A DNA stretch of 64,000 nucleotides from IMGVR_UViG_3300032242_002454:62001-126000, one strand, 5' to 3'; positions 36,131 through 51,568 are shown, counted from the first letter of the stretch. Program-made: numbers and translations. Notes: generated by a model from the sequence alone, not told the origin.

Positions 36131-36966
36131 TATTTATCCTCTTTCTCTATAACACTTTCTGCTGTTAAAAATGGACTATCAATTCCACCGTCGGCATATT
36201 GATGATAACCTTCTAAGGTAAGCATTACCTTGTCAGTTGCCATACTAATAATTTCCATCTCACGACCCTCACGCTCACGAATTTCTTCGTCTTCTAACAT
36301 TCGGATCAATCCCACCCAAGAACTCTTTCCGTCTTCGATTCTTTTAATTCTTTGTTCTCTTGTGGCTTTAAGATCCTTGCTAATCTTTTGTTGTTCATTG
36401 AGAAGCTTAGTATATTCATTTGTGTAGTTGGCAATACTATTACGAGCAAAACTTAACTGGGTTTCCATATTAACAAGCTTGGGGATGTCTCTTTCAATTT
36501 CTGGTTTATCATATTCCTTGTCAACTTGCTTTTGAAGTTTTTCAGTTTCGCTTATGTGACGTTTGCGTTCTTTCATACTTCTATTGATAAGAATATCGAT
36601 AGTGATGAATTGTTTAATCTGAAGTTCTTCGGCAGGAAGAACGTCTTCACGAAACTGTCTAATTAAATTAATCCACAAACTTTCAAAGTATTCTAGTTCC
36701 CCACTATCCTCATCAAACTGTCTTTTGATTTCTATCCAGAAGTTTTTCCCGTGCAGCTTCTGTCTTAAAATCCGATCATCAGTAGCTTCTTCAGGATCTT
36801 GATTCAACTTGGCTTCTTCAATATATCTTTGGACAGGAGCGGTTGACCGATTAAGATTTTCCGCAATAGTTTCAATAGACAATAACGCTATATTGTCGCG
36901 GATATATTTTTCTTCGTCTAATCCTAATTGACCTCTTTTTTTTGGTCCTTTAGTACTCATATCCAT
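36130..36966 (-). CDS. HTH + coiled-coil protein (possible terminase small subunit)
   Basis: N-terminal SIETIAENLNRSTAPVQRY HTH-like segment and a long coiled coil; upstream of the packaging genes. Confidence 0.45.
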   Translation of the reverse strand: MDMSTKGPKKRGQLGLDEEKYIRDNIALLSIETIAENLNRSTAPVQRYIEEAKLNQDPEEATDDRILRQKLHGKNFWIEIKRQFDEDSGELEYFESLWINLIRQFREDVLPAEELQIKQFITIDILINRSMKERKRHISETEKLQKQVDKEYDKPEIERDIPKLVNMETQLSFARNSIANYTNEYTKLLNEQQKISKDLKATREQRIKRIEDGKSSWVGLIRMLEDEEIREREGREMEIISMATDKVMLTLEGYHQYADGGIDSPFLTAESVIEKEDK

Positions 36967-37606
36967 GTTCCTCTAGTATCTGTTGAATAATGGTCTGGAG
37001 TTTTTTAAGGTCATTCTTATAGATCTTTTCTCCATATTTTAGTCTTAAATAGGTTTCTCTATATTGAGCAGGTAAATGTTTGTCTAGTAGGTCTATTATT
37101 TGGTGGTTAAAGACCATTTCGGGAATATTATCTGATTTATGATTGCGGGGGCAACTATCTTGAAGGTCATCTATGCCTACGGGTTTCATAATATTCTTTT
37201 TGGATGAATTGCGGGTTTCCCAGGCCATGAATAGTTCGCAGTCTGTTTTATTTTCAAACTCTAAACAGCCACTCATGCTTTTTTTACAGTGGGCATCGTA
37301 TAAGGGGCAACTTAAACAGGGTTTATCGGGTCTTTGATAATTATCTCTTTTATAATTGAAGAGGCGATTACGAACGTGGGTCCAAAGGAAATTTTCAAGA
37401 GGTCTTTTATTATCATACTTTTGAAGTCCTTCCAAGGCAAATATAGCAGCTTGTTGCTTCATGTCATCGAAACTATGATAGCCGAATTTAAATTTGTGGC
37501 CTAATCTTTTGCTAATATTGTCAAGTACATCTAAAAATTGTTCTTGGGTAACACCATTGGGCAGATTAGTTGAGGGGGCTTTCGGTTTGGTGGTTTTCTT
37601 GGTCAT
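36950..37606 (-). CDS. Phage sigma-70-family factor-like protein
   Basis: Region 2-like FDDMKQQAAIFALEGLQKYD...FLWTHVRNRLFNYKR; region 4-like LLDKHLPAQYRETYLRLKYG. Confidence 0.7.
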   Translation of the reverse strand: MTKKTTKPKAPSTNLPNGVTQEQFLDVLDNISKRLGHKFKFGYHSFDDMKQQAAIFALEGLQKYDNKRPLENFLWTHVRNRLFNYKRDNYQRPDKPCLSCPLYDAHCKKSMSGCLEFENKTDCELFMAWETRNSSKKNIMKPVGIDDLQDSCPRNHKSDNIPEMVFNHQIIDLLDKHLPAQYRETYLRLKYGEKIYKNDLKKLQTIIQQILEEHGYEY

Positions 37607-37727
37607 ATAATAGTTGAGCTATACTCTTTCCTTGAGGAAGTGATAGATCTTGGTCGATATTGAGGTCAGTACCAGAGGCTTTAACGGTCAATATGGAATC
37701 GACAATATTAAATTCAGGATTAGTCAT
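37566..37727 (-). CDS. Hypothetical protein
   Basis: ATG 37727 after an AAGGAG RBS (track start 37754). Confidence 0.5.
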   Translation of the reverse strand: MTNPEFNIVDSILTVKASGTDLNIDQDLSLPQGKSIAQLLYDQENHQTESPLN

Positions 37728-37811
37728 AATTTCTCCTTGCGCTAAACTTGTCAACTACTAGTATAATAGAGTTCTTACACTTTTAGTCAACTTTATTCAA
37801 GAAAGTAAAAA

Positions 37812-38039
37812 ATGGCAACATATAAAAAGTGGTCATCTAGTGAAACAGAGTTTATTCAGAATAATCATACATTGTTGTGTGATGAGGTTTTGGGGGTCAA
37901 ATTGAGTCAAATGACTGGTCAAAATATTACAACATCAATGGTTCGTCGTCAGAGACGCAAGCTGGCATTAAAGAAGCCAAGAGGTCGTCCTAGTAAGAAT
38001 AAGGTAGTATCAAGTCCTGATTCTTCAGTAACAAGTTGA
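37812..38039 (+). CDS. Small DNA-binding protein with HTH-like core and AT-hook
   Basis: KKWSSSE...ITTSMVRRQRRKL followed by KPRGRPSK. Confidence 0.6.
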   Translation: MATYKKWSSSETEFIQNNHTLLCDEVLGVKLSQMTGQNITTSMVRRQRRKLALKKPRGRPSKNKVVSSPDSSVTS

Positions 38040-38049
38040 AAGGATTAAA

Positions 38050-38352
38050 ATGAGAAATTTATTGTGGGCCTTATTAATTGTTGGAGTTTTGGGGACAACT
38101 GGATATTCTCAGGAATACTTTCAGTATGTTTATCCTCAGTATGGATATCAAGTTTTTCAACAGCCTGTTACGGTTTTTCAGCCAGTGGTAGTTCAACCAG
38201 CCCCAGTGGTAGTTTATCGTCCGGTAACGGTGATGCAGAATGTGGTGGCACCAGTTTATTACTATAATCAACCAGTAGTGGTTGAAGAAAGAAGGAGTCC
38301 TTGTTGGAAACATTGGAACTATGGTCCAATGAACCGGTTGTACTCTTATTAG
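38050..38352 (+). CDS. Secreted low-complexity Y/Q/V/P-rich protein
   Basis: Signal peptide-like MRNLLWALLIVGVLGTTGYS, then QPVVV/YYY repeats. Confidence 0.6.
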   Translation: MRNLLWALLIVGVLGTTGYSQEYFQYVYPQYGYQVFQQPVTVFQPVVVQPAPVVVYRPVTVMQNVVAPVYYYNQPVVVEERRSPCWKHWNYGPMNRLYSY

Positions 38353-38377
38353 AAAGTTTCTGGTAAGTTTGATTAAG

Positions 38378-38410
38378 AAAGCCTCTGGTAGAAATGCCGG
38401 GGGCTTTTTT
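38378..38410 (+). terminator. Intrinsic terminator
   Basis: AAAGCCTCTGGTA-GAAA-TGCCGGGGGCTTT followed by a T run. Confidence 0.85.
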
Positions 38411-38541
38411 ATTAAAGGTGGGGAATACTGGCTAATAAACTGGCCAATTATATATGGTGGTGCCTACTATTTTTGGACCACCCGGCCTTTTTCGAGGATT
38501 TCCTCTGGTTCTAAAATGAAACGAAAAAACCCCCTCAGCCA

Positions 38542-38619
38542 TAAGAGTATATAAATAAAGGACTTATGATCATCTCTATCCGCCAAATTTGTCATAAGTA
38601 CTTATGCTATAATGGTTTA
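38542..38619 (+). repeat. Double-palindrome element E1 (degenerate)
   Basis: taagagtat-N7-aaggactta / 28 nt / taagtactt-N7-aatggttta. Confidence 0.75.
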
Positions 38620-38752
38620 CGTCAAAAATAGAAATATATTGTGTTTGGCATGAAATTATATTTCAAAAATTCCAAAGATTTCTCTTGAAAGCGTCGATAA
38701 ATACTGTATAATGAAAGCACAAGAGAACAAGAGACAACAAAAGGACAAGAAA

Positions 38753-38989
38753 ATGATCACCATCAACAACCGCAACGAACTGAACAGCTTCCTTTATGAG
38801 GGTGATGAGGTTGATACCCTTGTGGGTGTCGCGAACATTGGTGGTGAGTTGCTCGCTGAGGCTTTGACCATGCCCAGCATGGACGGAAATAGCTTCTACA
38901 TTACTTGTTTCTTTCCCTACGGTGATGAGGGTGAGGAAATTGTGGTTGACGCTAACGGCGACGTGTTGAGCGATTCGATCTATTATTGA
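38753..38989 (+). CDS. Hypothetical early protein
   Basis: Promoter at 38685 and AAGGA RBS; track start 38711 lies inside the -10 box. Confidence 0.7.
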   Translation: MITINNRNELNSFLYEGDEVDTLVGVANIGGELLAEALTMPSMDGNSFYITCFFPYGDEGEEIVVDANGDVLSDSIYY

Positions 38990-39060
38990 AAAATCTTTTC
39001 TAAGGTATTGACAAAGCCCTAGCCGATAAGCTATAATAGAATCAACACAAGGGAAAAGAA

Positions 39061-39210
39061 ATGACCATTCAAGTACAAAACACCATTCGCCGCCTAGTTG
39101 CTCGCCACGGTTATTCTGCTACGTTTGTTCAGCACATGGGCGAAGGTATAAGCTTGTACAGTATTGGTGGTATCATGTATCGTATTCGTGGTGATGGTAC
39201 GATTCTCTAA
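39061..39210 (+). CDS. Hypothetical 49-aa protein (not in track)
   Basis: MTIQVQNTIRRLVARHGY...; own promoter (39008) and a purine-rich RBS. Confidence 0.7.
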   Translation: MTIQVQNTIRRLVARHGYSATFVQHMGEGISLYSIGGIMYRIRGDGTIL

Positions 39211-39302
39211 GACTTGATATAAACCCTTCTCATATTCTACTATTGACAACACCATAACCGATAAGCTATAATAGAACCAACACAAGAAAGAAAAGGGATA
39301 AG

Positions 39303-39521
39303 ATGCTTTTTGAAACTGGTTACAAAGTCATGATGAACAACCTTGACAAGATTTTTTCTGCTATGCGAGCTGGCAAGTATCACTGTGTGATTGACCCAAA
39401 GGGCAATGCTCATGTGGGCCTGATCAATGGTATCATGCGTGAAGATGGTAGTGGAAAGAATTGGATCGTGACGGTGACTAACCGTACAGTAAGTGAACAA
39501 GTGTTCATTCACGCATCTTGA
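39303..39521 (+). CDS. Hypothetical early protein
   Basis: Own promoter (39243); stop 5 nt before E2. Confidence 0.7.
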   Translation: MLFETGYKVMMNNLDKIFSAMRAGKYHCVIDPKGNAHVGLINGIMREDGSGKNWIVTVTNRTVSEQVFIHAS

Positions 39522-39525
39522 GACG

Positions 39526-39603
39526 TAAAGCCTTGACCGTAAAGGACTTACGGCGAGGCGGGCGGCCCCGGTTTGATGTAAGTGCTTGTGGGGTAACGAC
39601 TTA
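39526..39603 (+). repeat. Double-palindrome element E2
   Basis: taaagcctt-N7-aaggactta / 28 / taagtgctt-N7-aacgactta. Confidence 0.9.
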
Positions 39604-39610
39604 CGTCAAT

Positions 39611-39626
39611 TGGCACAGTATTTGCA
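39611..39626 (+). promoter_or_regulatory. Sigma-54 (-24/-12) consensus site
   Basis: TGGCACAGTATTTGCA (GG-N10-GC). Confidence 0.75.
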
Positions 39627-39731
39627 TTGCGAACCTTACGAAAATGTAAGGAAACTTTTCTCTTGCAAGCTAAAGAATACTCTGTATAATGTCGATATAA
39701 CAAGTAAGAGAGAAGAAAAGAGGATAAGAAA

Positions 39732-39917
39732 ATGGAAAATCTGAATTACGATCTGGTTTCTGATTGCTGTGGTGCTGGTTGTGCTTTCGAGACCGGTGAA
39801 GGTAAGGATAAGATCGGGATTTGCATGGATTGCAAGGAATGGTGTGGTGTGGTCGAGGACATTCCGGAAGATGAGGCCGACTACATTCCGGGCCTTGACG
39901 ATGGGGAGGGTATCTGA
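39732..39917 (+). CDS. Small Cys-rich protein with acidic tail
   Basis: SDCCGAGC...CMDCKEWC zinc-ribbon-like. Confidence 0.7.
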   Translation: MENLNYDLVSDCCGAGCAFETGEGKDKIGICMDCKEWCGVVEDIPEDEADYIPGLDDGEGI

Positions 39918-40001
39918 ACCTTACGACATTGCAAGGTTCAAGAGTTGACAAGCACCTAACCGATACTGTATAATAGACAAACAAGAAAGAGAGACTCCTA
40001 A

Positions 40002-40133
40002 ATGATTACGCCTATCGAATACGTTCAGCTGTTTGCCCTGATTGGTTTTGCTGGTTTCATTTCCTATACCGTTGGACAAGTGGGTAACGCTATCCACTGC
40101 ATCCTGCACGAAAACGACAACTACAACTACTGA
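40002..40133 (+). CDS. 43-aa single-TM peptide (not in track)
   Basis: MITPIEYVQLFALIGFAGFISYTVG...; promoter at 39945. Confidence 0.6.
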   Translation: MITPIEYVQLFALIGFAGFISYTVGQVGNAIHCILHENDNYNY

Positions 40134-40144
40134 AAGGTTCTCAG

Positions 40145-40462
40145 ATGACACACTTTGAAGCTATCAAGATGGTTCACGGCAAGACCAAGAAAAACTCTCG
40201 TAAGGTGGGCAACAACACCTATGCGGAAATTCTTCCTGATGGTAGCGTGGGGATCATGCTGCATAGCACCTATGTGGTGAAGATTCATCCCGACAATAGT
40301 GCTACCCTCAATAGTGGGGGTTGGCATACTCCTACGACTAAGGATAGAATCAATCAGTATTCGCCTGTACGGGTGTACCAACGCAAGGGACAGTGGTACC
40401 TCGAAAGTGGGGATGAGTACGAGGATGGGGTGGTGGTGGCCGATAACAACCTTATTTACTAG
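40145..40462 (+). CDS. Hypothetical early protein
   Basis: 105 aa; AAAGG RBS; stop 4 nt before E3. Confidence 0.75.
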   Translation: MTHFEAIKMVHGKTKKNSRKVGNNTYAEILPDGSVGIMLHSTYVVKIHPDNSATLNSGGWHTPTTKDRINQYSPVRVYQRKGQWYLESGDEYEDGVVVADNNLIY

Positions 40463-40465
40463 ACG

Positions 40466-40543
40466 TAAGTCCTTGTCCCTAAAGCACTTAGGGCAAGGCG
40501 GGCGGGCCGGGATCGACATAAGTGCTTACAAGGTAAGGGGTTA
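40466..40543 (+). repeat. Double-palindrome element E3
   Basis: taagtcctt-N7-aagcactta / 28 / taagtgctt-N7-aaggggtta. Confidence 0.9.
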
Positions 40544-40550
40544 TGGCAAT

Positions 40551-40566
40551 TGGCACGGTATTTGCT
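40551..40566 (+). promoter_or_regulatory. Sigma-54 (-24/-12) consensus site
   Basis: TGGCACGGTATTTGCT. Confidence 0.75.
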
Positions 40567-40681
40567 ATAGAAAGCTTACGAAATTATAAGGAAGATTTTC
40601 TGTTGTAGGCCATTGACAATGGACGATAATATGTGTAGAATAATCCAAGTTCAGCAACAACAACCACTCAGAGAGTATCTC

Positions 40682-40873
40682 ATGCGATCCTACTACGACC
40701 TGACCATCGACACCATCATCGTCACCGCTTGCTGCGGTGCTTACGCCATCACGCAGAATGGCAGGCAACGCAGTCGCCCGTCGCAACTCGTTCCGGGTGA
40801 GACCCTCACCTGTGAGGGGTGTGGTGGAGAACACCCGGTATTCGTTGAAGAAGATGTGGCTTGGGAGAATTGA
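40682..40873 (+). CDS. Small zinc-ribbon-like protein
   Basis: ACCG...CEGCG; follows promoter 40613. Confidence 0.65.
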   Translation: MRSYYDLTIDTIIVTACCGAYAITQNGRQRSRPSQLVPGETLTCEGCGGEHPVFVEEDVAWEN

Positions 40874-40962
40874 TCCGTAAAAGGAGACGTTTGTATACTA
40901 TGCTCTAACTGCTATGTGGCCCGGAGTTCCCGGATAGCTATCCCTAAAACCACGGGTGTTTA

Positions 40963-41040
40963 TAAGCCGTTATCCAGTAAGGACTTAGGATAACTTGGGC
41001 GGGCCGGGCTTGACGTAAGTCCTTTGCTCATAAGACTTTA
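40963..41040 (+). repeat. Double-palindrome element E4
   Basis: taagccgtt-N7-aaggactta / 28 / taagtcctt-N7-aagacttta. Confidence 0.9.
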
Positions 41041-41144
41041 CGACAACCTTACGGTATTGTAAGGAAACTTTCCTCTTGCAGGCTCAAGATGAGTATGGTA
41101 TAATGTCGATATAAGAGATAGAGAAGAAAGAAAGAGAGAAAAAG

Positions 41145-41327
41145 ATGTTTGAAATTGGTGACACAGTATCGTTCATGTGGGGAAAAGAGAAAAAAGTTGG
41201 TAAGATTGTTGGTTGGGAATATGACGAGGGTAATGTGTGGGAAGTGACCGTGACCCAGAGTATGAACGCATATTTTTCGGATGATAAACTGACTCCCGCG
41301 ACCGATACATGCGAGGTGTCAAAATGA
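41145..41327 (+). CDS. Small SH3/KOW-like beta protein
   Basis: FEIGDTVSF...GKIVG...VWEV pattern. Confidence 0.65.
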   Translation: MFEIGDTVSFMWGKEKKVGKIVGWEYDEGNVWEVTVTQSMNAYFSDDKLTPATDTCEVSK

Positions 41328-41521
41328 GCGTTTTCACTTTTCATCGAATTGATACTCACGAATATGTGGGAATGTTTTCTGGTAAGGATTGGATGGAGGC
41401 CAGACGTAAGGCTAGTATAAAAAGTGGAATACCAGTGGATGATATTCTACCTTGGGCTTTCAATACTGAAACCTTTCCCCTACCTGAGAGGGATGAGACT
41501 CCCCACTACCCCTATGACTGA
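41324..41521 (+). CDS. Hypothetical early protein
   Basis: GAGG RBS; coupled to the previous ORF. Confidence 0.6.
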   Translation: MSVFTFHRIDTHEYVGMFSGKDWMEARRKASIKSGIPVDDILPWAFNTETFPLPERDETPHYPYD

Positions 41522-41608
41522 ACCTTACGAAATTGTAAGGTTGACAGCATAAAATCAGTTTGGTATAATGCACACACAAGAGAACGATAGGCCTAAGAAA
41601 GAAAAGAA

Positions 41609-41794
41609 ATGAATCGGTTTTTCAAAGCAATCGGTGAAGATGGTGAGGTGCTGGGTATGGTCATTGCAGACAACGAGAGTCGGGCGGAAGTCCAGTTTCT
41701 GTTTCAGCCGTGGTGCAGTGTTTTCACGAAGTTCACGGTAATCGAATGCAGTCGGCAAGAGTTTTTCGACAAAGAGTTTGCATCCAAAAAGTAG
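41609..41794 (+). CDS. Hypothetical early protein
   Basis: Follows promoter 41541. Confidence 0.65.
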   Translation: MNRFFKAIGEDGEVLGMVIADNESRAEVQFLFQPWCSVFTKFTVIECSRQEFFDKEFASKK

Positions 41795-41813
41795 AGAAAG
41801 AAAGAGAAAGAAA

Positions 41814-42140
41814 ATGAAAACCAAGTTTCCCATCATTCAAGCTGCCAAGCGTCAAGCCCGTCTGTGCTTTCTTGGTATGGCGATTCCAACTGAAGTGAAA
41901 GACATTGATGGTGAGATGATTCAAGTGGAAAAGGTTCTGAAGTTCAATCGAACTGCCTTGAAGAATATGGGCAAGAGCAAGATGGAAAAGGTTGACCCGC
42001 GGATGATCGGTAGCGAGGATACTATGATCGTGCCAGTGGGCAAGCCGGGTAGCCGTGAACGTGTCGAGGAATTGACCAAGCAATATGGTGTTGTTGCTCA
42101 CCTTGAAATCAGCCCGTTCAGCTTCAAGGGGGAGGAATGA
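41814..42140 (+). CDS. Hypothetical early protein
   Basis: AG-rich leader; MKTKFPIIQAAKRQARLCF. Confidence 0.7.
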   Translation: MKTKFPIIQAAKRQARLCFLGMAIPTEVKDIDGEMIQVEKVLKFNRTALKNMGKSKMEKVDPRMIGSEDTMIVPVGKPGSRERVEELTKQYGVVAHLEISPFSFKGEE

Positions 42141-42188
42141 ACGACTGTACACTAGTAAACAGATATACAGTAAACGCAAAACTTGACG

Positions 42189-42266
42189 TAAACCCTTGCT
42201 ACTAAAGGACTTAGGGCAAGGCGGGCCGCCCCGGCTCGACGTAAGTGCTTATGCAACAATGACTTA
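42189..42266 (+). repeat. Double-palindrome element E5
   Basis: taaaccctt-N7-aaggactta / 28 / taagtgctt-N7-aatgactta. Confidence 0.9.
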
Positions 42267-42275
42267 CGACGACAT

Positions 42276-42291
42276 AGCAAATGCTGTGCCA
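42276..42291 (-). promoter_or_regulatory. Sigma-54 consensus site, reverse orientation
   Basis: Minus strand TGGCACAGCATTTGCT. Confidence 0.75.
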
Positions 42292-42398
42292 AATCATGTT
42301 AGAAATACCTTACAGCATTGCAAGGAAACTTTTTCTGGTCTACCCTATTGACATTTGACGATAATACTTGTATAATGATGAGACAAGAAAGAGAAGGA

Positions 42399-42623
42399 AT
42401 GAAAATGAGAAAGCCTCCGAAAAGTTCGACTGTCAAGGGTAAAATCAATGCCTACGCTTACAAGTGTGGGTTTACGTTTCATCCGAAAGAGGATGGATCG
42501 TTTGCTCTGTTCGACATTCACATGGGATACTACGTCTGCCGTGGTTCGCATGATCGTGTTGTCCAGTTCGTGATCGATGAATTGTGGGCGAAGTATTATC
42601 GGTCGCATCCGACCCCCGTATAG
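42399..42623 (+). CDS. Hypothetical early protein
   Basis: Promoter 42348; AAGGA RBS. Confidence 0.65.
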   Translation: MKMRKPPKSSTVKGKINAYAYKCGFTFHPKEDGSFALFDIHMGYYVCRGSHDRVVQFVIDELWAKYYRSHPTPV

Positions 42624-42683
42624 TGGGGGTTGACGATCATCTGCCAAATCACTACAATACAAACACAAGAAAGAGAGAATGGA

Positions 42684-42923
42684 ATGATTCAGATTGGTGA
42701 CAGGGTTCAAATTGGTTCTAGAATTGGTGCTGATCTTGCGTGGGCTGTTGTGGTGGACATTATCCCAGCCAATGACTATAGAGAAGCTATGTATCGTGTC
42801 CGGTTCGATGTTCCTGTGAACCGTGATGGACGCAGATCAGAAATCGTAACGATCACACCTAATCCTAATGAGTGCTGGGTGGATGATGGTATTGTGTTTG
42901 GTCCGTTTCTTGAGCAAAACTGA
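42684..42923 (+). CDS. Small SH3/KOW-like beta protein
   Basis: IQIGDRVQI...AVVVDI...MYRVRFD; promoter 42630. Confidence 0.65.
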   Translation: MIQIGDRVQIGSRIGADLAWAVVVDIIPANDYREAMYRVRFDVPVNRDGRRSEIVTITPNPNECWVDDGIVFGPFLEQN

Positions 42924-42935
42924 AAGGCTGAACAA

Positions 42936-43121
42936 ATGTTCTCACCGATGGAAAAGATTTGGATGGGCCTTGGATTGCAAGGCGCTCTGGAAATGATGGA
43001 TGCGTCATGCTCCCTGTGTGAAAGACTCACGGAAGAATGTGTGACCAATCCCCCAGTGAAAGATGCTTTGATTCAAAGCATTGCTGCTGAAATTATAGGC
43101 AATCGCCAGAGTAACTCCTAA
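42936..43121 (+). CDS. Hypothetical early protein
   Basis: Its TAA stop is the first 3 nt of E6. Confidence 0.6.
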   Translation: MFSPMEKIWMGLGLQGALEMMDASCSLCERLTEECVTNPPVKDALIQSIAAEIIGNRQSNS

Positions 43122-43196
43122 GTGCTTACCGCATAAGGACTTACGACACGGCGGGCGGGCCGCGTTTGACGTAAGTTCTTATGAGATAACGACTTA
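43119..43196 (+). repeat. Double-palindrome element E6
   Basis: taagtgctt-N7-aaggactta / 28 / taagttctt-N7-aacgactta. Confidence 0.9.
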
Positions 43197-43205
43197 CAAC
43201 AACAT

Positions 43206-43221
43206 AGCAAATGCTGTGCCA
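43206..43221 (-). promoter_or_regulatory. Sigma-54 consensus site, reverse orientation
   Basis: Minus strand TGGCACAGCATTTGCT, identical to 42276. Confidence 0.75.
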
Positions 43222-43325
43222 AAGTTTCTATCCAAACCTTACGACATTGTAAGGAAAGTTTTTCTGGTCTAAGCTATTGACAAACGACGATAATAATGGT
43301 AGAATGATAAGACAAGAAAGAGAGA

Positions 43326-43508
43326 ATGAAAATGGAAGAATTTTCCACTAGGGTTTTGCAAGATAATCTGTGGCTTGAGCAAGTCCGGCTCACTAGAGAT
43401 ACTGATCCTGAAATGATCGAACTGAGAAAACAGCATATTTCCTATCTTGCCACAGAATTGCTCCGTCGGTATCGTGCGGAGTCTTTGTCTCTGGCTAGTT
43501 CCAGCTAA
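43326..43508 (+). CDS. Hypothetical early protein
   Basis: Promoter 43277. Confidence 0.65.
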   Translation: MKMEEFSTRVLQDNLWLEQVRLTRDTDPEMIELRKQHISYLATELLRRYRAESLSLASSS

Positions 43509-43645
43509 CCCTGTCGGGTTGAAACGTGGCCTAGTCAGACTAGTCAGCGAACCCTGTGGGCCTTGTAAGGTTGACAACTAAAGTTTTGCAGTGTAGAATG
43601 TCGATAATAGATATAGGAAAGATGACCAGTAACCAAGAGGAATGT

Positions 43646-43843
43646 ATGATAGACTATATCAAGCGGTATGATTGGGTGGAGTTTGATTATAAGGGTGAGA
43701 ACTATCGTGGTGAAGTTCGTAGGGTTTTGGATAAGCCCAAGGGAAAGATGATGATTGTGAAAATCGGCCTGACCGAATATCGTTCGTGCTATCTTGACCA
43801 GTGCGAAAACATGATCCATGTTGCTAACACGGTGGAGGCTTGA
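43646..43843 (+). CDS. WYL/SH3-like small protein
   Basis: VEFDYKGENYRGEV...EYRSCYLDQC resembles WYL-type folds (inference); GAGG RBS. Confidence 0.55.
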   Translation: MIDYIKRYDWVEFDYKGENYRGEVRRVLDKPKGKMMIVKIGLTEYRSCYLDQCENMIHVANTVEA

Positions 43844-44034
43844 ACATGAATGGTTTTATTCTGGTGTGGGTTTGGATGGGGGCTATGCTTTTTGTTTTGG
43901 GTTTTGTATATTTCCTTTCTATTGTAAGGGAAGTCTGGCAGAGACTTGCCGAATATGAGAGAATGAAGTCTAGGGGCTTTACTCTTATGAAAGATGAAAA
44001 TGGTGATGAGTTCTGGGTAGGATATGGGGATTGA
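43840..44034 (+). CDS. Single-TM small protein
   Basis: FILVWVWMGAMLFVLGFVYFLSIV hydrophobic segment. Confidence 0.65.
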   Translation: MNMNGFILVWVWMGAMLFVLGFVYFLSIVREVWQRLAEYERMKSRGFTLMKDENGDEFWVGYGD

Positions 44035-44215
44035 CCCAATAACACTGGAGATACAGGGATGTATCAATTTGATTTTATTAGTGTTGCTTTTGGTTATATT
44101 GTCGGTATCTTACTCTCTGCTAGTATGTCACATATCATGTATATGGAGGAAAATGATGAAATCGAGTGACTACATCTTATGGGGGGTATGTTTTACCCTT
44201 GGCTGCATTATGACG

Positions 44216-44293
44216 TATCTCCTTCACCAGTAAGGACTTACGACCAGCCCGGCCCGCCCCGCGAAGCGTAAGTGCTTATGCTGCAACACTTTA
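44216..44293 (+). repeat. Double-palindrome element E7
   Basis: tatctcctt-N7-aaggactta / 28 / taagtgctt-N7-aacacttta. Confidence 0.85.
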
Positions 44294-44423
44294 CGTCAAC
44301 AAAAAGATTTTTCATGTTTGGCATGAAATTATATTTTGGAATTTTCCAAGTTCCTGCTTGACACTAGCCGATAATAAGTGTAGAATCACAACACACGAAC
44401 GGTAACCACTAAGGAACAGAATC

Positions 44424-44597
44424 ATGCTGAACTTCGACGAGATCAACGACATTCTGAACGACATGGCCGAAGCGGGGATTGTTGAGCCGATGGTCGAGCC
44501 TATCGACGATCCTAGTGTGGAAGTGAATTTTTGGGATTGGGCAGACGTTGTGGGTGCTGTTGACGATTTCATTCCAGAGGAGTATATTGATGCTTAG
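44424..44597 (+). CDS. 57-aa acidic protein (not in track)
   Basis: MLNFDEINDILNDMAEAG...; 17 D/E and no K/R; promoter 44358, AAGGA RBS. Confidence 0.75.
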   Translation: MLNFDEINDILNDMAEAGIVEPMVEPIDDPSVEVNFWDWADVVGAVDDFIPEEYIDA

Positions 44598-44663
44598 TGC
44601 GATTGCTTTTGTTGTGAGCTATATTGGTTTGTTTTACACTATCACCATCGTGAGGGATTGACC

Positions 44664-44939
44664 ATGAGCTACGAATATGACGACCTTGAAGATTTTTATG
44701 GTATCGACGCTGATGATCGTACTAATGATTATTGGGCTGGAAATGATGATCTGGAGAATGATTCTGATGATTCGTTTGATGACAGTATGGATGGTGATGC
44801 TGAGTCTGCGTTGGCTTCCGCTGGATGGGGAACCGACGAGGACTATGGTTACTATGGTGACGATGGAGTAGAAGATTTCCATGCCGATGAGGCTGTGGGA
44901 TTCGTAGACTATAATGAGGATGGCCCATACGACGATTGA
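44664..44939 (+). CDS. Extremely acidic protein (DNA-mimic candidate)
   Basis: About 34 D/E in 91 aa, one R, no K, many Y/F/W. Confidence 0.7.
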   Translation: MSYEYDDLEDFYGIDADDRTNDYWAGNDDLENDSDDSFDDSMDGDAESALASAGWGTDEDYGYYGDDGVEDFHADEAVGFVDYNEDGPYDD

Positions 44940-44949
44940 AAATTCGCCG

Positions 44950-45027
44950 TAAACCCTTTGTGTATAAGCACTTAGGGCTTGCGCGGCCCGCCCGATTTGC
45001 TCTAAGTTCTTATTCTGCAACACTTTA
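44950..45027 (+). repeat. Double-palindrome element E8
   Basis: taaaccctt-N7-aagcactta / 28 / taagttctt-N7-aacacttta. Confidence 0.9.
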
Positions 45028-45122
45028 TGTCAACCTTGCGATATTGTAAGAAAACTATCTGCTTGACACCTAAAGTTTCTATGCTATACTTGTCGATATA
45101 AGAGATAGAGAAAGAGAGTGAC

Positions 45123-45296
45123 ATGATGAAAGTTTTGCAGTTGGTGTTGAACGGTGAGCCTCTGTCGTTTACGGTGGGAGCTACGGATTGGGCAGATGCT
45201 TGTGAAAAGTTTTCTGCTACCTACAGTTGGTTTGACGATTTGATGAAGTGTCAGTACGTTAGGATTTCTTTTCAAGAGGTTATGGGAAATGAGTAG
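45123..45296 (+). CDS. Hypothetical 57-aa protein (not in track)
   Basis: MMKVLQLVLNGEPLSF...; promoter 45063. Confidence 0.65.
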   Translation: MMKVLQLVLNGEPLSFTVGATDWADACEKFSATYSWFDDLMKCQYVRISFQEVMGNE

Positions 45297-45477
45297 GTAT
45301 TACGAAGGTCGTTTTAATCCGTACAATCGTCATGATACGGGAATGTATGTGGTCTATCGCAAGAGTGACAACAAGCATCTTGGAACGGTTGTGGATTGTC
45401 GTAGTGAGAGCGAAGCCAAGCGTAAGGCTAGCTACCAGTTTGATTGTGAGTGCTATGTTAGTGAGATTGAGGAATAA
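45289..45477 (+). CDS. Hypothetical early protein
   Basis: Coupled; GAGG RBS. Confidence 0.65.
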   Translation: MSRYYEGRFNPYNRHDTGMYVVYRKSDNKHLGTVVDCRSESEAKRKASYQFDCECYVSEIEE

Positions 45478-45478
45478 A

Positions 45479-45622
45479 ATGAAAACAAAAAAGAAAGAGT
45501 TGACAGCACACGAAAAAGCTGTTATACTCATGAATCGTGAAGCTGGTCGTGCAGTAAGTCGAGTTAAGTTGTTGGAACAGTTGTATTTTGAAACCATGAA
45601 AGCAAAGGAATTGGCAAAATGA
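45479..45622 (+). CDS. Hypothetical early protein
   Basis: GAGGA RBS before ATG 45479. Confidence 0.55.
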   Translation: MKTKKKELTAHEKAVILMNREAGRAVSRVKLLEQLYFETMKAKELAK

Positions 45623-45849
45623 AGTGCGTTGTGACTCATACGGATACGTTTGGTGGCGAAGCTAACTATGGCTGGGTGAATCGTTACGAGTTTATCCCCA
45701 AGAAGAATGCTAGCCAGCGTAGTGTTGTTCGTAAGGCTAAGGCTCTGGCTGGTATGACTGCGGTCAAGGCCGATACATGCGATTACGGCGACGGATATAC
45801 CGTCAAGCCTCGCGGTTATGCTCAGATCATCTTTGTTGATTTTGAGTAA
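45619..45849 (+). CDS. Hypothetical early protein
   Basis: ATGA-coupled; THTDTFGGEANYGWVNR. Confidence 0.7.
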   Translation: MKCVVTHTDTFGGEANYGWVNRYEFIPKKNASQRSVVRKAKALAGMTAVKADTCDYGDGYTVKPRGYAQIIFVDFE

Positions 45850-45867
45850 AAAAATAATCTCTCGTCG

Positions 45868-45945
45868 TAAACCCTTTGTGTTCAAGCACTTAGGGCCGAC
45901 GGGGGCGGCCGGATTTGCCGTAAGTCCTTATGCGTCAACACTTTA
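45868..45945 (+). repeat. Double-palindrome element E9
   Basis: taaaccctt-N7-aagcactta / 28 / taagtcctt-N7-aacacttta. Confidence 0.9.
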
Positions 45946-46043
45946 CGTCAATCCTTACAATCTCGTAAGATTCAAGTTTACCCCTTGCAATAGACGATAA
46001 TAGATAGTAGAATACGATATAGAAGAAAGGCAAGGGTGAGAGC

Positions 46044-46235
46044 ATGAGTCCTGACGGAAGCTATAATGGTTACGCAAACTATCAGACGTGGAATGTTTGT
46101 TTGTGGCTGAGTAATGATGAACTTCTGTGTAGTCTGGCTAAACAGTGTACCTCTTACGATCATTTCAAGATTTTGATTCGTGAGATTTTCGAGAAGGATA
46201 ATCTGAGGTTTGAGACTCCTGATGGTGTGGCTTGA
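46044..46235 (+). CDS. Hypothetical early protein
   Basis: YNGYANYQTWNVCLWLSND; promoter 45985. Confidence 0.7.
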   Translation: MSPDGSYNGYANYQTWNVCLWLSNDELLCSLAKQCTSYDHFKILIREIFEKDNLRFETPDGVA

Positions 46236-46377
46236 AATGACAGCGGCATCAATATTGCTGAAATGGTGGAGTATTGGGAAGAAAATTTTTCTAAAGTTCC
46301 CGCTTGACAAATGTCGATAATTAGTGTAGACTTGTGGCATGGATGTTTGATTGGTTTTCAATTTTGAAAGGGTTTCT

Positions 46378-46782
46378 ATGAGTGATACGATTTTGTTTGG
46401 TTCGATTCTTTCGGCTGTTGCCGTTGCTGTTGTGGGTTTCGTCTTCTATTCGGTCTATGGTGGATCGAAGGCTAGCTTGGCGAATGCCCAAGAGGGTCAG
46501 GTTTTCAACTTTGTTTATGAGCAGCCGTTGCATGGAACGCATGAGCGTTTTCTTGCTAAGGTGATTGGTAAGCAGACGTTGACTGTGGATCAGATTGCTA
46601 GACTCAATCGTAAGAGTCGTTATCGTGCTGGTGATCCTGAGTTCATCCGTACCAGTAATCTGGTAACGTGTCGAACCGCTGACGGCAAGGTGCGTAATTT
46701 CTATGCAGAGCGAGTGAGCAATTGCCGAAAGCCTCTTCTGGCCGGTGCTTTGTTCAAGAGTGGATTTGCTAACCTGTTCTAA
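46378..46782 (+). CDS. Membrane-anchored hypothetical protein
   Basis: N-terminal TM, then a WYL-like CRTADGKVRNFYAERV segment; promoter 46304. Confidence 0.7.
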   Translation: MSDTILFGSILSAVAVAVVGFVFYSVYGGSKASLANAQEGQVFNFVYEQPLHGTHERFLAKVIGKQTLTVDQIARLNRKSRYRAGDPEFIRTSNLVTCRTADGKVRNFYAERVSNCRKPLLAGALFKSGFANLF

Positions 46783-46818
46783 AAACTAGCAGTCTCTGCA
46801 CACTAACTGACCAACCCC

Positions 46819-46896
46819 TAACCCTTTGACACCAAAGGACTTAGGGCGAGGTCGGCCCGCCCGGCAAGTCGTAAGTCTTTATCTGACAACACTTTA
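46819..46896 (+). repeat. Double-palindrome element E10
   Basis: taacccttt-N7-aaggactta / 28 / taagtcttt-N7-aacacttta. Confidence 0.9.
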
Positions 46897-46980
46897 CGAC
46901 AATCTTTTTTGTTCAAGTTTTTCCTCTTGACAGGCCGATAATAGTAGTGTACAATACGAGGAACCTAAAGGAGAAAAAAG

Positions 46981-47256
46981 ATGCTGTTTACGCCATATGC
47001 TTTGACAAATCGGACAACGCGAACGATCACGACTGTGGACGGTGTGGATATGATTGAGTTCAGTGGGCTGTCCACTGGAGGTCGTGAGTTTTCCATCACT
47101 ACTCGACTTGACGATGCCCAGCGTTGGGTCAACGGAGAGTTGATTCAAGTTGCTTTTCCGTATCTCAATGCTGATGATCGTGAGATTCTCAAAACGGGAA
47201 TTGATGCTCAGGAGTGGGAAACGATGTTCGCAGGAACACAAGAGGAGGATGAATGA
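46981..47256 (+). CDS. Hypothetical early protein
   Basis: AAGGAG RBS; GELIQVAFPYLNADDREILKTGI. Confidence 0.75.
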   Translation: MLFTPYALTNRTTRTITTVDGVDMIEFSGLSTGGREFSITTRLDDAQRWVNGELIQVAFPYLNADDREILKTGIDAQEWETMFAGTQEEDE

Positions 47257-47402
47257 GTACCGATACCTATATGGTCATGAAGGGCAGCAAGATTGTTGGG
47301 TATGTTCAAGCGTACAGTACCTACCATGCTTTGCGTCAGGCTGAGAAACTTTATGGAAATAATTTGCTCATTGAGCGAATCTCTAAAGTTTGTCCTGCCT
47401 AA
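47253..47402 (+). CDS. Hypothetical 49-aa protein (not in track)
   Basis: GAGGAGG RBS; MSTDTYMVMKGSKIVGYV... Confidence 0.65.
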   Translation: MSTDTYMVMKGSKIVGYVQAYSTYHALRQAEKLYGNNLLIERISKVCPA

Positions 47403-47439
47403 TCCTACGGATTTGGGCTGTGTGGGTATAGTCAGCCAG
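47400..47439 (+). repeat. 40-bp family B repeat (TAATCC-N3-GGATTTGG...AGTCAGC)
   Basis: taatcctacggatttgggctgtgtgggtatagtcagccag. Confidence 0.75.
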
Positions 47440-47498
47440 TAGTCGGGACTTGACAAAGAGTCTTTGATAGAGTATATTGAGCAGAAAGGGAGAGGATT

Positions 47499-47702
47499 AT
47501 GTTGACAAGTGACGAAAGAGACGCTGTTTGTGGGTGTGTGGCTGATTTTGCTACTCGTTTGCTTACCGCTGCTACTATTGATGAGAAGTCTATGCACCAA
47601 GAACTGGATATTTTCTTTGAGTTCTTTTGTGAGGCTCTTGAGATTGCCAGAAGGGATGGGGTGGTTAGGGTTCGTGAGTCTATTGGTGCTAGTAATAACT
47701 AA
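47499..47702 (+). CDS. Hypothetical early protein
   Basis: Promoter 47450, GAGGA RBS; stop 4 nt before E11. Confidence 0.65.
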   Translation: MLTSDERDAVCGCVADFATRLLTAATIDEKSMHQELDIFFEFFCEALEIARRDGVVRVRESIGASNN

Positions 47703-47705
47703 TCG

Positions 47706-47783
47706 TAAGTCCTTATCCTTAAAGTACTTAGGGTAAGGCGGGGCGGCCGAATTTGACGTAAGTGCTTGTGTATCATAGGGTTA
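47706..47783 (+). repeat. Double-palindrome element E11
   Basis: taagtcctt-N7-aagtactta / 28 / taagtgctt-N7-atagggtta. Confidence 0.9.
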
Positions 47784-47859
47784 CATCAACTCTAAAAAAT
47801 TTTTGAAATTCCTATAGATAGGTGTTGACAACGGACGATAATAGATGTATACTTAGCAC

Positions 47860-48370
47860 ATAAGCAGATGAGGGCCTCTGGCAGAATGATATCAAAGAAG
47901 CCACGGTTAAATGCAAGGCCGAGTATGGCATAACCCAATCTGTTTATTTTACAATACAAAACTCGTGGGTCCATGCCTTGGACTAGGTTGGGATAGCCTA
48001 TTTCGATAAACACTGCGGCTGTAATGCAGCGTAGGGTTGCCAACGGGGCTATACGTTGGATAGAAGTACCAATCTATGGGGGATCGCGTCCTCACCACGT
48101 TATAATACAAGATGGCCGATGATAAAAAGACGCATAAGTCTGATCCTGTGTAGTGGATATAAAGGCATATTAAGCCACATACTACACCGGCCATCCCAAT
48201 ACAATCAGTAATCGTTCCCAAGAGCCAGACAGATTGCTTCATGAACAATCTCAGGGAGGTTTCCGTGGACGGTTTCCACTAGTGTTTACCTGGCCCAAGG
48301 GTTAAAAATATCGGGTATTAGTGGAGTATAGAACCGGAGTCGTAAATGGTTCGCTGGTTACAATACAAAG
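47860..48370 (+). ncRNA. Candidate large structured ncRNA (~510 nt, four domains joined by AAUACAA)
   Basis: Starts at the predicted +1 of promoter 47825-47853; no plausible plus-strand ORF; about 15 complementary stems found by eye; AATACAA at 47953, 48104, 48198, 48362. Confidence 0.65.
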
Positions 48371-48380
48371 GAGAAAGATA

Positions 48381-48590
48381 ATGATTGCTACAAAAGAATT
48401 GATTGCTGAAGCGAAACAACTTGCCAAAGACAACTATGAGAGTTGGGGCCAATACATAGTAGAGTGCTATGAAGATAGTGAGTTAGCCGAAAGCCTTAAA
48501 GATTTTGACAGCCTAGATGAATGGGTTGAAGTTAGAATCTCAATAGCAAACATATACGAGGAAAGAGAAGCTTTCTATGAGCAAGGATGA
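48381..48590 (+). CDS. Hypothetical protein
   Basis: AAGGAG RBS at the end of the structured region. Confidence 0.7.
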   Translation: MIATKELIAEAKQLAKDNYESWGQYIVECYEDSELAESLKDFDSLDEWVEVRISIANIYEEREAFYEQG

Positions 48591-48740
48591 AGCGATTATT
48601 AAGATTCTGAAAGTTTTGAAAAGCGCCATGATGGTGATGTGCAAGCCTAATAGGGATGAGGCATTGACTTTAGCAGAGGAGCATGGTATAACTGCTAAGG
48701 ATTTGATCGAGGTGTGGGAAAAGATAACGCTGAGGATATA

Positions 48741-48866
48741 ATGATCTACTTAAATATTAACGAGATCGAACGGTTGGCTGAAATTGTGGCTGAACTGGTT
48801 AAGTTGGATATGACTGTGATTGCTGAGTTGAAGGGGACTAAGTGGAGTATTGAGGTGACTAAATAA
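48741..48866 (+). CDS. Hypothetical 41-aa protein (not in track)
   Basis: GAGGA RBS; coupled to 48866. Confidence 0.55.
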   Translation: MIYLNINEIERLAEIVAELVKLDMTVIAELKGTKWSIEVTK

Positions 48867-49120
48867 TGGAATGGATTAGTTTTCACGGCCCTCGCCGCCC
48901 TATTAATGGTCAAAAGATAATCTATTATGGTGAGCCTATTGGTGTGTGGCGTGGAACATATAGGATAAATTATAATGATCCTTTTTGTATTCACAATATT
49001 GATTGTGGTGAAGCTCCCGGTAACGTAGACTATATGGATGCTCCGTGGTGGATGCCAGATGAGGGACAAGACAAGCCAGCACCGCCCAAAGAACATTATC
49101 CAAAAGATTATCCTAGTTGA
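48866..49120 (+). CDS. Hypothetical protein
   Basis: GAGG RBS; stop 3 nt before E12. Confidence 0.65.
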   Translation: MEWISFHGPRRPINGQKIIYYGEPIGVWRGTYRINYNDPFCIHNIDCGEAPGNVDYMDAPWWMPDEGQDKPAPPKEHYPKDYPS

Positions 49121-49122
49121 CA

Positions 49123-49200
49123 TAAGTCCTTGCTGCTAAAAGACTTAGCTCAAGGGCGCCCGGCCGGTTTCGTCGTAAGTCCTTGCTACTAAAGACTTTA
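49123..49200 (+). repeat. Double-palindrome element E12
   Basis: taagtcctt-N7-aaagactta / 28 / taagtcctt-N7-aagacttta. Confidence 0.9.
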
Positions 49201-49282
49201 CGATTAGCAATATTTCTTCAAGATTTCCTCTTGACTTGTCGATAATAGTAGTGTAAGATACTAGCAACACACGAAAGGGAAT

Positions 49283-49525
49283 ATGATGACTGTTGCTGAA
49301 CTGATCGAAGAATTGAACAAACTGCCACAAGATATGCTCGTGATGGTTCCGGGCTATGAGTGTGGATATGATAATGTTGAAGTTAGGCCTAATACTGCTG
49401 TTCGTCTAAATGATAATTGGGATGGACAAGAGAAGATTAATTGGTGGGATGGCAGACATTCTATGTCTTTCGGCCCTACTGAAGATGAGATTACGCATTG
49501 TGTTGTTCTTTGGAGAGGAAAATGA
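49283..49525 (+). CDS. Hypothetical protein
   Basis: MTVAELIEELNKLPQDMLVMV; promoter 49231. Confidence 0.7.
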   Translation: MMTVAELIEELNKLPQDMLVMVPGYECGYDNVEVRPNTAVRLNDNWDGQEKINWWDGRHSMSFGPTEDEITHCVVLWRGK

Positions 49526-50377: not shown

Positions 50378-50379
50378 CC

Positions 50380-50457
50380 TAAAGCCTTGTCCCTAAAGAA
50401 CTTAGGGCGAGGCGGGGCGGCCGAATTTGATGTAAGTCCTTATCTGGAAAGAACTTA
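50380..50457 (+). repeat. Double-palindrome element E13
   Basis: taaagcctt-N7-aagaactta / 28 / taagtcctt-N7-aagaactta. Confidence 0.9.
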
Positions 50458-50916: not shown

Positions 50917-50981
50917 CCAACTCTAAGGAGTTATAATGACTGTGAGCCTTCACGGGACGCCGTGGGGGCTTGCAGTATTAC

Positions 50982-51540: not shown

Positions 51541-51568
51541 AATTTCCTCCATACCTTATAATACACCA

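Follow-up and report, generated by a model that had tools for sequence, protein, structure and literature searches.

Sigma-54-type boxes in both orientations within the early-gene cassettes of a freshwater phage

Organization of the early-gene cassettes

We analyzed a 64,000-nucleotide stretch (positions 62001 to 126000 of IMGVR_UViG_3300032242_002454; here, the window) of a 204,625-bp freshwater phage genome, in which small early genes are separated by repeated regulatory cassettes. Each cassette consists of an 84-nt element, a slot, a small hairpin, a sigma-70 promoter, and a leader. The element is a double inverted repeat, with an invariant AAGnACTTA, a GC-rich core, and then an invariant GTAAGTnCTT, plus outer arms, and is present in 16 to 17 copies between 38.5 and 57.7 kb, each followed by a near-consensus promoter. 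The copies relevant here are E2 (39526 to 39609), E3 (40466 to 40549), E4 (40963 to 41046), which has no box after it, E5 (42189 to 42272), and E6 (43119 to 43202), all on the plus strand. The sequence TGGCAC-N5-TTGCW matched exactly at four slots, at 39611 to 39626 (+; box 1), 40551 to 40566 (+; box 2), 42276 to 42291 (−; box 3, facing E5), and 43206 to 43221 (−; box 4, facing E6). Each box starts 2 to 4 nt after the element as delimited here and is followed by a CCTTAC..GTAAGG hairpin, which after box 1 lies at 39634 to 39651 (+) and is followed by AAACTTTTCT, giving it a terminator-like appearance, with equivalents at about 40574 to 40591, 42308 to 42325, and 43237 to 43254. The sigma-70 early promoter downstream of box 1 (TTGCAA-16-TATAAT; 39663 to 39690, +) serves the gene at 39732 to 39917, and its equivalents lie at 40613 to 40641, 42348 to 42376, and 43277 to 43305.

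The two sense boxes precede two small zinc-ribbon genes, at 39732 to 39917 (+; DCCG..CxxC..DYIPGxDDGE family) and 40682 to 40873 (+; a paralogue with ACCG..CxxCGGEH), which are the only two members of this gene family in the phage. The two antisense boxes point away from the next gene. Sigma-54 transcripts start about 12 nt downstream of the GC dinucleotide; the predicted start sites are at about 39637, at the 5′ arm of the downstream hairpin, and about 40577 for the sense boxes, and at about 42265 and 43195 for the antisense boxes, which would read into the element and then into the genes at 41815 to 42140 (+; an early gene widely conserved in relatives) and 42936 to 43121, respectively.

The cassettes are analogous to the promoter-early stem-loop (PeSL) mobile cassettes of T4-type phages (PMC2839356, PMC4122927), which are also repeats of about 100 bp between small nonessential early genes, with a stem-loop containing G/C tracts and a strong sigma-70 promoter with an AT-rich upstream region. 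As in PeSLs, gene indels between close relatives are bounded by the repeats: in the 97%-identical relative L009 (relatives are designated here by L or G numbers), the left half of E3 is fused to the right half of E4, where the window has an extra cassette at about 40528 to 41313, which includes box 2; box 4 is conserved in L009. However, the phage is an analogue rather than a member of this group, since its TerL is no more than 24 to 26% identical to any cultured phage and none of the hits is T4-type, its replicase is a split DnaE-type polymerase, and its element is a double inverted repeat around a GC core. PeSLs as described are composed only of a sigma-70-like promoter and a stem-loop, so that a sigma-54 box would be an extra module. 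The element has no U-tract, and no significant covariation supported any of the helices tested, leaving the CCTTAC hairpin as the only terminator-like structure.

Quality and conservation of the boxes

In order to test whether the four boxes could have arisen by chance, we compared the window with 100 dinucleotide shuffles. The expectation was 0.06 matches, and no shuffle reached four. The four boxes are also the only matches in the whole genome, even with looser patterns. On a matrix built from the logo of the phage family, boxes 1 to 4 scored 23.4, 26.0, 27.1, and 27.1 bits, respectively, whereas the next best site in the genome scored 16.5 bits, and the number of sites at 12 bits or more (9) was close to that in shuffled genomes (1 to 5). 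The four sites therefore form a class of their own, and the observation made in the initial annotation is correct. The boxes are, however, two pairs of paralogous cassettes (76% identity over 150 nt for the sense pair and 82 to 85% for the antisense pair), so that within this genome there are about two independent events. Between the sense and antisense versions, similarity is confined to the 17-nt motif itself, indicating that the motif is what is kept and not a larger inverted block.

The initial annotation also described an identical 21-mer with an intact −24 and a broken −12 box. We found this sequence twice, at 38643 to 38663 (+) and 44316 to 44336 (+); the positions given previously, 38646 and 44319, are the first T of TGGCAT. 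It has an intact −24 (TTTGGCAT) with TATAT in place of the −12 TTGC, and it lies about 22 nt upstream of the TTGAAA/TATAAT promoter of the first cassette and, in its second copy, upstream of the promoter at 44358 to 44386. The variant is conserved in at least 11 relatives, always in the sense orientation and at this promoter, and is thus a conserved variant and not a decayed site.

Absence of the sites from related phages had been named beforehand as grounds for rejecting the sigma-54 reading; we therefore examined 80 related contigs. These contained 134 unique boxes at exactly N5 spacing, where about 2 would be expected from composition (an estimate from base frequencies over 1.3 Mb), against 14 or fewer at any other spacing from 0 to 10 nt. 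The reversed-pattern control gave no matches in ten complete or near-complete relatives. The logo from 207 family sites is TTTGGCAYRRnATTTGCT, which equals the sigma-54 consensus at every informative position and agrees with the extended consensus YTGGCACGr-N3-TTGCW reported by Barrios et al. (1999); all four sites have the GG (−25/−24) and GC (−13/−12) dinucleotides at the invariant 10-nt separation. In the complete relatives G000, G001, G003, G004, G012, and G014, the boxes lie in one 2.4- to 3.7-kb stretch at the TerL-proximal start of the early region. The boxes are therefore conserved, and this ground for rejection fails. That they are neutral passengers of the recombining cassettes is very unlikely: although the four boxes here are two paralogous pairs and cassettes demonstrably recombine, across relatives the flanks and the N5 spacer diverge while the informative positions stay fixed, the spacing is strict, and the number of sites far exceeds expectation.

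Orientation and context in relatives

Use of either orientation in the same slot is a general property of the family. In relatives, 58 boxes were antisense, 38 were sense, and 29 were unclear. At the slot orthologous to that of box 1, the box is sense in L048, L039, and L044 but inverted in L011 and L012 while the flanks stay collinear, and the slot of box 3 holds a convergent pair in L019 and forward-reverse-forward triplets in L011 and L041. Pairs occur in fixed geometries: convergent pairs with −12 ends only 2 to 4 nt apart and tandem pairs 26 to 27 nt apart, neither of which can be co-occupied by two holoenzymes, which looks more like selection for binding than for direction. Neighboring gene families showed no orientation rule across relatives, and box-to-promoter distances were only loosely clustered. 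These observations favor the view in the initial annotation that more than plain gene expression is involved.

However, simple gene expression, which the initial annotation considered a poorer fit than a roadblock, a decoy, or antisense transcription, cannot be dismissed. In at least 17 unique cases in relatives, the box is followed by TATATA, the standard ATAAGAAAGAGAGA leader, and ATG, with no sigma-70 promoter, and is thus the only visible promoter of the early gene. Boxes of this class are consistently oriented toward a gene, and the expected +1 falls where the sigma-70 promoters also start. Seven of these promoters drive the zinc-ribbon family to which both genes behind the sense boxes here belong, including orthologues of the gene at 39732 to 39917 in L036, L075, and L084. 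Phages with sigma-54-only promoters also carry slot-type boxes in both directions (L016, L045, L058, and L059) and therefore appear to depend on active sigma-54 polymerase rather than only neutralizing it. Lake metatranscriptome contigs, which cover the region thinly, come from strain variants, and have no direction, gave no start sites.

We next looked for an activator. No enhancer-binding ATPase, GAFTGA motif, or sigma-54 domain was found in this phage or in nine others, comprising relatives and other box-rich phages; the only PF00158-like hits were RuvB, and no consistent upstream activator site was recognized. Of five MAGs into which related contigs had been binned, a heterogeneous set, three have RpoN. 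The suggestion that the double palindromes are themselves enhancer sites for a bacterial enhancer-binding protein is unlikely. The elements contain strictly invariant inverted repeats, which suggests sequence-specific recognition rather than RNA structure; no significant covariation was found, and enhancers work from either side and in either orientation. However, only 4 of about 17 elements carry a canonical box, plus 2 with the variant; the nearest palindrome is only a few nucleotides from the box, too close for looping; relatives with quite different element sequences have the same boxes; no cognate ATPase was found; and the element is better explained as the recombination and putative terminator part of a PeSL-like cassette.

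A roadblock or insulator, in which a stable closed complex in the slot would stop read-through from the upstream cassette or shield the sigma-70 promoter, is also disfavored. The slot does lie between a terminator-like element and the next promoter, and box placement is orientation independent. In E. coli, however, sigma-54 bound inside genes had no effect on expression of those genes, and the authors regard roadblock repression as effectively ruled out (PMC4591121). In addition, about 11 of the roughly 17 elements here have neither a box nor the variant and presumably need none, and the boxes do not overlap the sigma-70 −35 hexamer or the UP region (36 to 56 nt away).

Possible roles of the boxes

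Taken together, the data partly support the interpretation in the initial annotation. Our preferred reading, to which we give a probability of roughly 0.45, is that the four boxes are genuine recognition sites for the host's sigma-54 (RpoN) RNA polymerase holoenzyme that act as enhancer-dependent promoters, two sense and two antisense, and that they are one interchangeable module of cassettes whose recombination spreads, deletes, duplicates, and flips the box. In this view, the sense boxes would give the downstream zinc-ribbon gene a second promoter about 60 nt upstream of its sigma-70 start, whereas the antisense boxes would start an RNA running through the element and into the preceding early gene, allowing an activated host enhancer-binding ATPase to damp that cassette. 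The activator would have to come from the host or from an unrecognized phage protein. The quality of the motif, its strict spacing, conservation, and slot position, the recombination of cassettes, and the use of the motif as sole promoter in relatives are established by our analysis, whereas sigma-54 binding, the start sites, antisense silencing, and the identity of the activator are inferred. The phage family probably engages the enhancer-dependent RNA polymerase of its host in a way that has not been described.

A less likely but live rival is a direction-independent sink, in which the boxes exist to bind sigma-54, free or as holoenzyme, and not to start RNA. Multiplied by phage genome replication, consensus sites would draw the limited sigma-54 pool onto phage DNA, switching off sigma-54-dependent host responses or freeing core polymerase for sigma-70 and the phage's own sigma-like factor. 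The occurrence of both orientations, the in-place flip, the paired and tripled geometries (which would fit several free sigma-54 molecules), the consensus strength of the sites with no intermediates, the failure to find an activator or common enhancer site, and a copy number that varies from 0 to 12 between relatives are consistent with this reading, as is an unrelated complete 43.6-kb phage, L093, with 7 boxes within 170 nt. In contrast, the same lineages carry sigma-54-only promoters in front of early genes, which need active polymerase; four sites per genome is a small sink until replication is advanced; and the boxes are confined to one slot type and one 2.4- to 3.7-kb stretch instead of being spread over all noncoding DNA. 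We found no report of such a DNA decoy for a sigma factor, which marks novelty and is not evidence either way. In its broadest form, which we consider unlikely but which is not excluded, a widespread clade of freshwater jumbo phages and at least one unrelated phage (L093) would carry shuffling, invertible arrays of consensus sites without an activator as a nucleic-acid "anti-sigma" strategy that silences enhancer-dependent host responses during infection.

It is also unlikely that the motif is the operator of some other DNA-binding protein, phage encoded or host, that merely resembles the sigma-54 consensus as two direct TkGCA repeats one helical turn apart. Palindromic pairing, tandem arrays, and orientation independence are typical of operators, the host may lack RpoN, and in the G004/L030 lineage the flanking element palindromes themselves contain TGCCA-TTT-TGGCA. 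However, the match extends to secondary consensus positions (T at −26 and −27, C/T at −21, a purine at −20, and TT before GC), the spacing is exact, single asymmetric boxes are the majority, the box sits at promoter distance from conserved leaders in relatives, and no candidate protein was identified.

The boxes share with canonical bacterial −24/−12 promoters the GG and GC dinucleotides exactly 10 nt apart and T-rich positions before both elements, but they are found in a lytic-type jumbo phage without a recognizable activator, in either orientation in one slot, often as overlapping convergent or tandem pairs, and directly upstream of strong sigma-70 promoters. There is precedent for phage use of host sigma-54 as well as sigma-70 in the sigma-54-like promoter of Pseudomonas phage YuA (Ceyssens et al. 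2008, as cited in PMC10914365). YuA, a 58-kb siphovirus, is reported with a single such promoter region, whereas here clusters of 4 to 12 boxes in both directions are conserved across dozens of sampled contigs of a clade of at least 596 related contigs. In E. coli, many high-quality sigma-54 sites are transcriptionally silent under test conditions, some are antisense, and decoy or interference roles have been discussed (Bonocora et al. 2015, PMC4591121); those sites are mostly inside genes, weaker than consensus, and biased to the sense direction, while the phage sites are intergenic, consensus strength, and orientation neutral. Finally, in overlapping sigma-70/sigma-54 promoters such as glmY of enterobacteria, the two promoters overlap precisely and share a start site, whereas here the sigma-54-type box lies about 60 nt upstream of the sigma-70 start or is inverted.

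Sigma-54-type boxes in the early region

The window covers bases 62,001-126,000 of a 204,625-bp IMG/VR virus record with direct terminal repeats, and the public runs that hold the sequence are freshwater metagenomes. Its left part carries late genes on the minus strand, encoding tail and head proteins and the large terminase (TerL) at 32417-34453. A 218-aa ORF at 36950-37606 (-), at the boundary between the late and early regions, has a weak sigma-70 region-2 match (E about 1e-3, below the Pfam cut-off) and may encode a phage late sigma factor. A classical intrinsic terminator at 38369-38400 (a GC stem, then TTTTTTATT) closes the small plus-strand genes at 37812-38352, just before the first cassette. 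From about 38.5 to 57.7 kb the composition jumps from 31-36% to 41-47% G+C, and this stretch is filled with small plus-strand genes, each behind a near-consensus sigma-70 promoter, together with eight tRNA genes. An 84-nt repeat, hereafter the element, occurs 16 times, with an additional degenerate first copy. A scan of the window against Rfam at gathering thresholds found only tRNAs.

The motif TGGCAC-N5-TTGCW matches at 39611(+), 40551(+), 42276(-) and 43206(-), against an expectation of 0.06; the observation made in the initial annotation is correct. These are the only matches in the whole genome, even with relaxed patterns. On a matrix built from the family logo the four boxes score 23-27 bits, whereas the next best site scores 16.5, which is at background level. 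An identical 21-mer, with TGGCAT but with TATAT at -12, is present at 38643 and 44316. All six sites lie right after an element copy and before a sigma-70 promoter, a position referred to here as the slot. The four boxes are two paralogous pairs, and the sense and antisense versions share only the 17-nt motif. We considered whether the box could instead serve as a sigma-70 -35 element, but inspection of the sequence showed no -10 at 16-18 nt, and this reading was rejected.

The element has strictly invariant inverted repeats (AAGnACTTA and GTAAGTnCTT) around a GC-rich core. In order to test if it is conserved as an RNA structure, two alternative pairing schemes were examined; neither showed more covariation than shuffles, and the conserved parts are invariant sequence. 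A 97%-identical relative, L009, lacks the whole early-gene cassette that carries box 40551 and gene 40682-40873 (window 40528-41313 versus L009 3455-3962). In its place L009 has a hybrid element, in which the left half of E3 (the third element copy) is joined to the right half of E4 (the fourth) inside the shared GGGCGGGCCGGG core. The elements therefore behave as recombination linkers, as described for the PeSL cassettes of T4-type phages, which combine a stem-loop with G/C tracts and a strong sigma-70 promoter and recombine to shuffle early genes (PMC2839356). As the phage is not T4-type, the cassettes are an analogue of PeSLs rather than a member, and they extend PeSL-type modular shuffling beyond T4-type phages. 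Recombination between paralogous cassettes is the simplest way to spread, lose, duplicate or invert the box.

Conservation, orientation and arrangement in related phages

A search with the terminase found at least 596 related viral contigs, of which the 80 best loci (1.3 Mb) were analyzed. In these loci TGGCAY is followed by TTGC at exactly 5 nt in 134 unique sites, whereas any other spacing from 0 to 10 nt has 14 or fewer. The logo of the family, TTTGGCAYRRnATTTGCT, is the sigma-54 consensus, including its secondary positions. At least one box is held by 39 of the 80 loci. In complete or near-complete relatives the boxes lie in one 2.4-3.7-kb stretch at the terminase-proximal start of the early region, and the reversed pattern gives zero; one complete relative (G013) has none. 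The initial annotation had proposed that its reading would fail if the sites were not conserved in related phages, and this condition did not hold. The 21-mer variant is also conserved in at least 11 relatives, where it is always sense and always upstream of the same first-cassette promoter.

Relative to the local sigma-70 promoters, 58 unique boxes are antisense and 38 are sense, with a further 29 of unclear orientation. Pairs fall into discrete classes: convergent with 2-4 nt between the -12 ends (9), divergent with 8 nt (4), tandem at 26-27 nt (7) and forward-reverse-forward triplets at 43 nt (5). At the slot orthologous to 39611 the flanking element, hairpin and sigma-70 promoter align collinearly in six phages, in four of which the box is sense (the window and relatives L048, L039 and L044) and in two of which it is inverted (relatives L011 and L012), showing a regulatory module inverted in place. 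Distances from the box to the sigma-70 -35 hexamer are only loosely clustered, and no fixed spacing was found. No orientation rule tied to a neighboring gene family was found either, as the zinc-ribbon family neighbors boxes in every arrangement. In one sublineage (L030/G004, L056, L057, L127 and L096) the inter-cassette element keeps its architecture of palindrome, GC core and palindrome, but the palindrome is CTGCCA-TTT-TGGCAG instead of the CGTAAGT/ACTTACG type, so that it contains -24-like TTGGCA in both arms. The boxes in L030/G004, L056, L057 and most of those in L127 point into this element, whereas in L096 two of the four slot boxes point away from it.

A different, complete phage of 43.6 kb and 55% G+C, L093 (IMGVR_UViG_3300009285_003899), carries eight boxes near one contig end, at 12282-12706. 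Seven of these lie within 170 nt, as three convergent pairs plus one more box, and no enhancer-binding ATPase is encoded. The orientation flips, the overlapping arrays and the seven clustered boxes of this unrelated phage fit selection for binding as such. Together they keep alive, as a less likely alternative to promoter use, the hypothesis that the boxes act as a sink for sigma-54.

Several features nevertheless suggest that boxes of this type can be used as promoters. At least 17 unique sites in relatives have TGGCACGG-N3-kTGCA, then TATATA, then the standard purine-rich leader of the family and an ATG, with no sigma-70 promoter in between. The expected +1 coincides with the start of the leader that the sigma-70 promoters also use. 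This second putative promoter class, found in relatives L016, L017, L021, L036, L045, L047, L058, L059, L061, L067, L075, L077, L079 and L084, is preceded by an A/T tract (AAAAAATATTTTT) and is absent from the genome of the window itself. Seven of these sites would drive a small zinc-ribbon family (DCCG...CxxCGEHC). The present genome has only two members of that family, at 39732-39917 and 40682-40873, and they are exactly the two genes behind the sense boxes. Phages with such apparently sigma-54-only promoters also carry slot-type boxes in both directions. A further complete phage of 46.5 kb, L112 (IMGVR_UViG_3300006916_000082), has five same-strand consensus boxes 85 nt to 2.5 kb apart, at least one of which sits directly upstream of a start codon. 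It looks like a phage whose operons are driven by sigma-54 promoters, again without an encoded activator.

Predicted engagement of host sigma-54

Sigma-54 polymerase binds its promoters tightly but stays silent until an ATPase acts, and phages are almost never described as using it. No sigma-54 domains, no enhancer-binding ATPase and no GAFTGA motif were found in this phage, in which the weak PF00158 hits are a RuvB homologue, and the same holds for nine other phages with boxes, including complete 46-kb and 44-kb genomes. Attempts to identify the host gave no consistent assignment. Comparison with cultured phages gave no DNA match, and TerL and DnaE give only 24-34% identity to unrelated phages. 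TerL relatives are binned in MAGs labeled Rickettsiales, Alphaproteobacteria, Flavobacteriales, Silvanigrellaceae and SAR202, which is inconsistent and probably reflects binning by composition; RpoN is present in 3 of 5 of these MAGs. Protein-atlas look-ups of RuvB and the sugar dehydratase returned mainly viral clusters. Three lake metatranscriptomes hold only thin, strain-variant, undirected contigs over the region, one of which begins at 39613 and one of which ends at 39634, and these are too thin to show start sites.

The quality of the motif, its strict spacing, its conservation and its position in the slot are established by the sequence comparisons, as is the recombination of the cassettes, whereas binding by sigma-54, the start sites and the activity of the boxes as promoters are inferred from sequence alone. 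On this basis we consider it likely that the boxes are bound by host sigma-54, either free or as holoenzyme. Within that, directional promoter use is the best-supported reading, with a probability of about 0.45. It rests on the sole-promoter class in relatives, the link to the zinc-ribbon genes, the precedent of phage YuA and the co-occurrence with sigma-54-only promoters. The interpretation offered in the initial annotation, which favored a roadblock, a decoy or antisense transcription over simple gene expression, is partly supported. The sink remains possible, but a roadblock is disfavored by direct evidence from E. coli (PMC4591121). That the motif is the operator of another protein is doubtful but cannot be excluded in the absence of an assigned host.

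Literature searches found no description of clustered, invertible sigma-54 sites in phages or of a sigma-54 DNA decoy. What distinguishes these boxes from known -24/-12 promoters, including the phage precedent, is their clustering and their use in either orientation. If the boxes are promoters, a globally common group of lake phages ties part of its early program, in both sense and antisense, to whichever host enhancer-binding protein is active, which would couple infection to host physiology such as nitrogen status, envelope stress or RNA damage. If they are instead sinks, this would be a new kind of host takeover, by DNA decoy. In either case the sites are short, of consensus strength and readily amenable to study with standard E. 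coli reagents.

Additional features of the phage genome

The early region (38000-58000) is 41-47% G+C against 31-36% elsewhere. The phage tRNAs (Arg-TCT, Thr-TGT, Gln-TTG, Asn, Trp, Glu-TTC and Lys-TTT) read A/T-ending codons, and early genes may be tuned to a host of higher G+C, with late genes served by the phage's own tRNAs. At 54962-55048 ARAGORN calls a tRNA-Ser with anticodon ACT, which is unusual; Rfam also scores it as a tRNA (57 bits).

Giant ORFs of 4,023, 5,022 and 2,674 codons lie on the late strand, at window 1019-13090 (-) and at genome positions 37321-52389 (-) and 17642-25666 (-), respectively. Outside the window, the replicative polymerase is a DnaE (Pol III alpha) split into two ORFs about 0.9 kb apart, at genome positions 3437-5311 and 6201-7832, one of which has the PHP and NTPase domains and the other the finger, HhH and OB domains. 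The genome also has a class II ribonucleotide reductase, an ATP-dependent ligase and the RuvB homologue.
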